Assembly (NCBI GenBank): GCA_904063045.1
Contig: CAJFCJ010000002.1
Coordinates: 992,001-1,056,000, forward strand
DNA from: Dimorphilus gyrociliatus
Taxonomy: Eukaryota; Animalia; Annelida
Reading direction: 5' to 3'
DNA length: 64,000 nt
Each line of letters opens with the position of its first letter. Position 1 is the stretch's first letter. Shown piece by piece: positions 1,201-2,600 of the stretch. The position numbers and the translations under genes are program-made. The notes beneath the pieces were generated by a model. The model was not told where the DNA came from and did no database searches. It saw only the letters and a program-made list of their open reading frames with translations.

Positions 1201-2600
1201 TCACACATTTTCTTCATCGTCCTCGTACTTTCGCTTAACCCCCCTTGGCTCTTCTTCTTCCTCAGACTCATCCTCTTCATCCTCGGCTTCGGGGTTTACT
1301 TCGAATTCTTCACCTTCACTATCCTGCTGTAAAATAAAAAAACAATAAGATTTGACAAATTTTAGCTAAAACGTATTTACCTCTATTCCATCTTTCGTAA
1401 GATATTCCAATCCAACCTCATCATCTTCATCTTCCACTTCTTCTTCATCTTCGACATCTGAAAGAGGGAAAATAAGAATTAATCGTTTATTTTCAAACAA
1501 AAATTCAGTTTACCCTCAGCTTCTTCATCATCGTCTTCCTCTTCATCTTCGTCTGCTCCCTCTTCTTCATATTCCTCATCATCCCTGTCATATCCATCTA
1601 GATATTTTAATTGAGGTAACAAGTTGAAAACCTTCGTTCTATATTCCTCAACAGTGGTCACTTTGCAGTTAAACACGTCAAGGTTTTGGAGATTTTGGAG
1701 GTGCTTTAGCGGTTCTAGTGTTTCAATCTCTTCAAGTTTGTTTCCAGATAAATTAAGATGTGAAAGTTTGGGACAGCCTTTCAAATGTTCTAATCCCGAT
1801 GATATTCGATTGTCACTCAACTCGAGTTTAAGCAAATTAGGCAAAGCCGGAAAACCCTTTAGAGTGGTTAGACCACTATTGATTAAAGACAAAGATTCCA
1901 GATTTTTGAATTCGGTGGTCAGACCTTCAATACAGGTGGCTCGGCAGTCGTCTAACGTGAGTTCTGTTATCTGCAAGATAAGTTAGTAAATTAAAAATTT
2001 GAATGTTTTTAAAAAAACAGATGCTTTTTATTCGTTAGATCAGATTTGTACTTATAATCATGGGATAAATTCATAGCCCAGTACGAAATTTCATCATTTT
2101 GAAAATTTTGCAAATGGCGGGAAGAGTCTTCAATGGACTTTGATGGAACCTAATAAAAAACGTGCATCTTGCTGCCTACCTGCAGTTGACGTATAATAGC
2201 ATTATGAGGGAGCGTAATTAAGATCAGTAGGGATACTTGGGGCACCAAATACCTCTATTTCGTTACATGCATTATTTTGAGAGGTAAAAACCGAACCAGT
2301 TTGGCGCCATATTTGATTTCTGCAACGGGTATTATAACAGATATTATGAGCTTTAACTTCTTTGATGGATATTACACTTAACATTCAATCTTTATTTTTA
2401 AATGTAGTAGTGTAGAATCCTAAATGCTGAAGCAGCGCGTGAAATTTAGCAGGTTTTCCTGACATTTTATCAGCCGGTTAAGAAAGCCGGGAAATAATTC
2501 AACTTGGAAGAACTCCTCACCGCACAAATTTGCTAAGATGGAATATACTTACGTCCTCCGCCTTTCTGCCTCTTTTCTCCAGCTCTATCCGTTTCTCCAT
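1201..2600 (-). CDS. ANP32: Acidic leucine-rich nuclear phosphoprotein 32 family member, 4 exons (2600-2553, 1970-1514, 1457-1381, 1326-1201)
   Basis: [12 protein letters not shown] start, LRR repeats ([17 protein letters not shown]), LRRCT ([19 protein letters not shown]), D/E-rich tail with terminal KRK NLS. All junctions GT-AG and in phase. Confidence 0.95.
2040..2097 (-). ncRNA. Candidate intronic box C/D snoRNA in ANP32 intron 1
   Basis: Host-strand order: C box ATGATGA (2097-2091), 16-nt guide, D' ATGA (2074-2071), 9-nt spacer, C' ATGATTA (2061-2055), 11 nt, D box CTGA (2043-2040). D box lies ~67 nt upstream of the 3' splice site, in one of the few enlarged introns. No clear terminal stem. 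Confidence 0.65.

Follow-up and report, generated by a model that had tools for sequence, protein, structure and literature searches.

A compact intronic box C/D snoRNA candidate of the SNORD88/snR76 type in the ANP32 gene of Dimorphilus gyrociliatus

Introduction

Does the first intron of the ANP32 gene of the annelid Dimorphilus gyrociliatus carry a guide RNA and, if so, which ribosomal nucleotide would this RNA serve? The question is raised by a 58-nt element at positions 2040-2097 of the window, that is, of the whole 64-kb stretch of DNA analysed here. The genome paper of this species gives a median intron of 66 bp, describes regulatory ATAC peaks in its unusually long introns, and makes no mention of snoRNAs (PMC7854359). 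A preliminary description of the element had offered two readings, either a divergent SNORD88 homologue or a guide for modifying a nucleotide close to the sarcin-ricin loop of 28S rRNA.

The first of these readings leads to known guides in yeast and human. The yeast snR76 guides 25S Cm2197 (PMC5199042), while SNORD88A, SNORD88B and SNORD88C guide human 28S C3680 (PMC10911272). In the literature, we found no paper that names snR76 and SNORD88 together, and their equivalence thus rests on the guide they have in common. Judging from sequence comparison, the worm element is very probably a new and unusually small member of this snR76/SNORD88 family.

Results

A four-box layout within a spliced ANP32 intron

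The host gene encodes DgyrCDS1132, an ANP32 protein of D. gyrociliatus. The features of gene and element are given below in window coordinates, with identities to a related worm that is introduced in the next section.

2553..2600, minus: coding part of ANP32 exon 1, 16 codons from the ATG at 2600, equal to the first 16 residues of DgyrCDS1132
1971..2552, minus: ANP32 intron 1, 582 nt, GU..AG, host of the element; junction 1970/2553 present in RNA contigs of runs X1, X2 and X15
1514..1970, minus: ANP32 exon 2, leucine-rich repeats, 100% identical to DgyrCDS1132; RNA contigs cover 1514-1970
2040..2097, minus: whole box C/D snoRNA candidate, 58 nt, with a C/D'/C'/D layout; orthologue at L006:2770-2825
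2091..2097, minus: C box AUGAUGA, read from the sequence; 7/7 identical in the related worm
2075..2090, minus: D' guide AAUUUCGUACUGGGCU, 16 nt; 15/16 identical
2071..2074, minus: D' box AUGA, a variant; canonical CUGA in the related worm, 3/4 identical
2061..2070, minus: D'-C' spacer, 10 nt, unconserved; 4/10 identical, with a 2-nt length difference
2055..2060, minus: C' box UGAUUA; 6/6 identical, a hexamer common to nine metagenome homologues
2044..2054, minus: D guide UAAGUACAAAU, 11 nt, lacking a convincing target; 10/11 identical
2040..2043, minus: D box CUGA; 4/4 identical
1982..1988, minus: UACUAAC, a branch-point-like motif read from the sequence, with a putative branch-point A at 1983, about 56 nt past the D box

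The claim of a complete C-D'-C'-D architecture in 58 nt was borne out. A generic regular expression for the four-box layout, applied to both strands, gave one match in the 64-kb window and none in any of 200 dinucleotide-preserving shuffles of it, which confirms the layout as a real sequence feature. The element also displays the general characters of a box C/D RNA: a C box of the form RUGAUGA near the 5' end, a CUGA D box near the 3' end, and internal D' and C' boxes with guide-length spacing (guides of 16 and 11 nt, spacer of 10 nt). At the element, no clear terminal stem bringing C and D together was seen, and the 58 nt folded no better than their shuffled versions.

The D box ends 69 nt before the exon-2 acceptor, which is confirmed by RNA contigs of three runs. 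The location upstream of this splice site had been recognised before, with a slightly shorter distance of about 67 nt. The spacing reportedly matches the usual position of intronic box C/D snoRNAs, as described by Hirose and Steitz in 2001. Our RNA evidence consists of assembled contigs from mRNA-type or metatranscriptome libraries, and over the element these show unspliced pre-mRNA only; in run X15, which is from the same species, intron 1 is covered as unspliced RNA at about 3% of the exon depth. The presence of a snoRNA would help to account for the size of this intron, which is nine times the median length in the species.

Conservation follows the boxes and guides

The intron was compared with that of a related worm using genomic Logan contigs (L006-L008), which were found through a 90% cluster member of the host protein; the host-gene comparison covers dinophilid worms. 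In the related worm, the element sits in the matching ANP32 intron (579 nt), 67 nt from the acceptor. Together, its boxes and guides match at 45 of 48 positions, versus 4 of 10 in the D'-C' spacer. The 3' flank of the element reaches 35/69 identity and the unconstrained intron 46-52%. Since the D' box of the related worm is the canonical CUGA, the register of the guide is fixed. At the sequence level, this segment-wise conservation, in which boxes and guides are kept and the spacer is free, is what one would expect of a box C/D snoRNA.

Two further relatives were available. In the sister taxon represented by run X3, exon 2 differs at 17 of 455 nt, an identity of about 96%, and among the differences listed for this closer relative none falls in 2052-2153. 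The third relative, P0122, is represented by a spliced transcript, which does not include the intron.

Immediately upstream of the C box, 50 nt (2098-2147) agree with the related worm at 47 positions. As this stretch is as conserved as the candidate snoRNA, conservation over the entire block does not point specifically to a snoRNA. One could thus read 2040-2147 as a single conserved regulatory block of the ANP32 intron, made of transcription-factor sites or of splicing control with a cryptic donor, in which the box-like words occur by chance. The 50-nt extension past the C box agrees with this reading, and so do a perfect E2F-type word in another conserved block of the intron, the ATAC peaks in unusually long introns noted in the genome paper (PMC7854359), the use of a GU at 2051 as a donor in run X3, and the restriction of the RNA contigs over the element, from mRNA-type libraries, to pre-mRNA. 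The internal pattern argues for a snoRNA instead: the boxes and guides are retained, whereas the spacer drifts and varies in length, the D' box alternates between two functional variants, and the architecture was absent from all 200 shuffles. Contigs from unrelated eukaryotes, moreover, hold the snoRNA unit without the upstream 50-nt block, which is absent from the metagenome homologues described below, and some of these contigs are snoRNA clusters. On balance, we regard a purely regulatory block as improbable.

The donor seen in run X3 concerns the element directly. A contig of this run joins 1970 to 2052, so that the GU at 2051-2050, located within the D guide, acts as the 5' splice site of an 81-nt intron; the depth of this joint is uninformative on abundance, as the assembler may have clipped a short exon-1 branch. 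The GU itself is conserved. In the resulting splice form the D box is cut off and a stop codon stands directly before the joint. Because of this stop, and because exon 2 has no ATG, we consider the form non-productive. That snoRNP assembly and splice-site choice compete on ANP32 intron 1 is an idea which we hold to be unlikely; if a snoRNP normally masks the 2051 donor, the output of guide RNA and of productive ANP32 mRNA would be coupled.

The D' guide pairs best at 28S C2603

For the target search, the rDNA unit of D. gyrociliatus was taken from the assembly and the bounds of 18S, 5.8S and 28S were set with Rfam. All own rRNAs were then covered by an ungapped scan applying the fifth-nucleotide rule and by a duplex-energy scan. 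Three duplexes of the D' guide have to be weighed, listed here with a slash after the nucleotide that would be the target.

28S 2600-2610, target C2603: GCCC/AGUGCGA; 11 bp, 10 Watson-Crick and 1 G-U; -22.1 kcal/mol, the best on all rRNA
28S 3506-3518, target U3509, on the strand entering the sarcin-ricin loop: GCUU/AGUACGAGA; 13 bp, 10 Watson-Crick and 3 G-U, positions 4 and 5 included among the G-U pairs; -18.9 kcal/mol
28S, target C3198: UUUUC/AGUACGAA; 11 bp, with G-U at positions 3 and 4; -14.0 kcal/mol

Positions 2-12 of the D' guide pair with 28S 2600-2610, which brings position 5 opposite C2603. The complementarity to 28S on which the preliminary description relied holds only in part for the species' own rRNA and is best at C2603, the snR76/SNORD88 site. 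A 9-bp duplex had been proposed there; the pairing stands, and its length increases to 11 bp (10 Watson-Crick, 1 G-U) on GCCCAGUGCGA. The fifth nucleotide falls on the third C of GCCCAGUGCGA, in agreement with the earlier placement on the known methylated C.

Among 400 shuffled guides, 30 (7.5%) reached complementarity of D'-guide quality somewhere in the rRNAs. Complementarity alone is thus weak evidence, and what counts is the location of the match. For the D guide, the best rRNA match was 9 bp at 28S G3861, a value reached by 63 of 400 shuffles and hence no better than chance. Its lack of a significant rRNA target and its likeness to the D guides of compact homologues, which are short and AU-rich as well, lead us to hypothesize that this guide is probably vestigial.

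The rDNA unit used here is about 9.1 kb long and lies on contig G000:C164, with a 28S of 3925 nt. More rDNA copies are found on contig G000:C5, about 18 kb apart, and the contexts of the sarcin-ricin loop and of the snR76 site are identical in them (L001-L005).

Assignment to the snR76/SNORD88 family

The D' guide is complementary to GCCCAGUGC, and the third C of this sequence lies at the fifth position from the D' box, as in the snR76/SNORD88 family. With snR76 (Rfam RF01209, clan CL00071), the worm element has in common the succession of box C, the D' guide core ACUGGGC, one base and the D' box; the register is identical, the fifth nucleotide being the third C of GCCC. It differs from snR76 in its D' box, AUGA, in having a U at guide position 9 where snR76 has C, which gives the G-U pair, and in being intronic in a protein-coding gene.

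Rfam gave no match at gathering scores in the whole window. At permissive thresholds, the element attracted box C/D models only, including snR76 at 19.8 bits, and the related-worm copy scored 29.6 bits against the snR76 model (E 9.5e-5 in a 201-nt search); both values fall far short of the 55 bits set as gathering score. This shortfall is due to the length of the element, 58 nt against a model of 101 positions, and not to the guide half, which aligns fully.

The human SNORD88A/B/C likewise carry the guide directly past the C box, with an ending of the CACUGGGCU type that is mirrored by an antisense oligonucleotide (PMC10911272), and they are intron-encoded, as is the worm element. Unlike the worm, human has three copies, in another host gene, and the worm element is much shorter. 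The guides also differ in their extension: UCG in the worm fits the CGA that follows GCCCAGUGC in its own 28S, whereas the human oligonucleotide implies U there.

Across the 78-Mb assembly, neither pattern searches nor BLAST revealed a second copy of the element or another guide for the C2603 site beside a C box. Given the architecture, the position in a spliced intron, the conservation, the complementarity with its register, the uniqueness in the genome and the family resemblance that we observe, we consider it likely that the element is the single D. gyrociliatus counterpart of yeast snR76 and human SNORD88, guiding 28S C2603; that it is a box C/D snoRNA of SNORD88/snR76 type is very probable on these comparisons. 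The earlier suggestion of a divergent SNORD88 homologue thus gains support from the guide core and register, the best duplex, the conservation in the related worm and the wider family, all at the level of sequence.

From this assignment we infer a stable RNA, its assembly into a snoRNP and methylation of C2603. Our model suggests that the snoRNA would be freed from the spliced ANP32 intron 1, trimmed to about 58-62 nt, and packed with fibrillarin, Nop56/58 and Snu13. The D' guide would then pair with 28S 2600-2610, allowing fibrillarin to 2'-O-methylate C2603, the fifth nucleotide from the D' box. If so, a guide for a conserved methylation of rRNA can be reduced to as little as 58 nt, and an unannotated snoRNA would be added to the D. 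gyrociliatus genome.

Compact homologues occur in metagenome contigs

Metagenome contigs were scanned with a pattern comprising a C box, the guide core, a D'-like word and a C'-like word, which returned 24 loci. The full layout is present in nine distinct sequences of 54-67 nt (L014, L016, L017, L022, L024, L028, L029, L032 and L036), which share GUACUGGGCU followed by AUGA, a spacer of 6-11 nt, UGAUUA, a guide and CUGA. Three of these common features go beyond the scan pattern, namely the U before AUGA, the hexamer UGAUUA and the final CUGA. All nine read GUAC in place of GCAC. It follows that the guide U, which fits AGUACGA-type sequences, is an old family trait that yields a G-U pair at the canonical site, rather than an adaptation to the sarcin-ricin loop.

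Unlike the worm element, the metagenome homologues come from other hosts and organisms, on contigs of 16-39% GC, and no ANP32 was found in these contigs with tblastn. Their 5' guide extensions differ, and copies of the cluster type possess a long D guide that looks functional. For three homologues of this type, of which two lie on the cluster contigs, the best D-guide match is U2623, 20 nt downstream of C2603, with the worm 28S serving as a proxy for the conserved rRNA core. Three contigs with homologues are snoRNA clusters that match U31b, SNORD24, snR60/Z15 and snoR1. A variant of the family that combines a G-U pair in the guide duplex with AUGA as its D' box is thus widespread, yet invisible at Rfam thresholds.

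Viewed as contigs in their own right, L028, L029 and L033 are polycistronic snoRNA clusters of eukaryotes, which match snoR77Y and SNORD15 besides U31b, SNORD24, snR60/Z15 and snoR1. The SNORD88-type unit in these clusters is not recognised by Rfam either.

The sarcin-ricin complementarity as a probable by-product

The preliminary description had placed the fifth nucleotide on a C before the sarcin-ricin loop, on the basis of GCUC at this position. The worm's own 28S reads GCUU there (GCUUAGUACGAGA), and the fifth nucleotide is U3509, which lies opposite a guide G and is not Watson-Crick paired. The 13-bp length claimed for this duplex was reproduced, with 10 Watson-Crick and 3 G-U pairs instead of 11 and 2.

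A real snoRNA could still have 28S 3506-3518 as its relevant partner, alone or besides C2603, either methylating U3509 or acting as a transient folding chaperone. This is the longest of the duplexes and the second best in energy on all rRNA, and the 5' part of the guide, UUUCG, which is kept in the related worm, pairs over 5 nt here versus 3 nt at C2603. The G-U pairs at positions 4 and 5, by contrast, leave the nucleotide to be methylated without a Watson-Crick partner, and Cavaille and Bachellerie reportedly observed in 1998 that a non-Watson-Crick pair at the target nucleotide strongly lowers guided methylation. The duplex is also 3 kcal/mol weaker than that at C2603, and the U that enables it is family-wide, being common to the nine homologues, whose extended guides mismatch the loop. 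We know of no methylation at the position equivalent to U3509. The sarcin-ricin flank is accordingly a very unlikely principal partner, and the more exciting of the two claims, a guide for modifying a nucleotide beside the loop that binds elongation factors, finds no support and falls away.

We take the complementarity at the sarcin-ricin flank to be a by-product; the two rRNA segments differ by transitions only, which are tolerated by G-U pairing. The D' guide may nonetheless contact the sarcin-ricin flank as a secondary, non-methylating contact.

A real snoRNA directed at 28S C3198 (UUUUC/AGUACGAA), which lies about 26 nt before what we take to be the equivalents of yeast Um2724 and Um2729, would have nine consecutive Watson-Crick pairs from position 5 within its 11 bp, but it would form the weakest of the three duplexes, with G-U at positions 3 and 4, at a nucleotide that to our knowledge is not among the known methylation sites, and we consider it extremely improbable. 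C2603 is retained as the predicted target.

Further observations on intron 1 and the genome

A second match to the guide core in the genome falls within coding-like sequence, lacks a C box and was rejected as a copy of the element.

Two blocks of intron 1, at 2275-2344 and 2098-2147, are 93-94% identical to the related worm, against about 50% in the neighbouring intron. The first contains TTTGGCGC (plus strand, 2300-2307), a perfect E2F-type word, and the second contains TTCCCGCC (minus strand, 2123-2116), an E2F-like word. These conserved blocks are possibly promoter-proximal regulatory DNA of ANP32.

Run X15 shows minor alternative splicing in ANP32 intron 1. Joints at 1970/2180 and 2319/2376 define a 140-nt cassette exon (2180-2319, minus strand), whose donor is unconserved in the related worm, and an alternative donor at 2375. 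The depth of these alternative joints is about 1.5% of that of the main junction.
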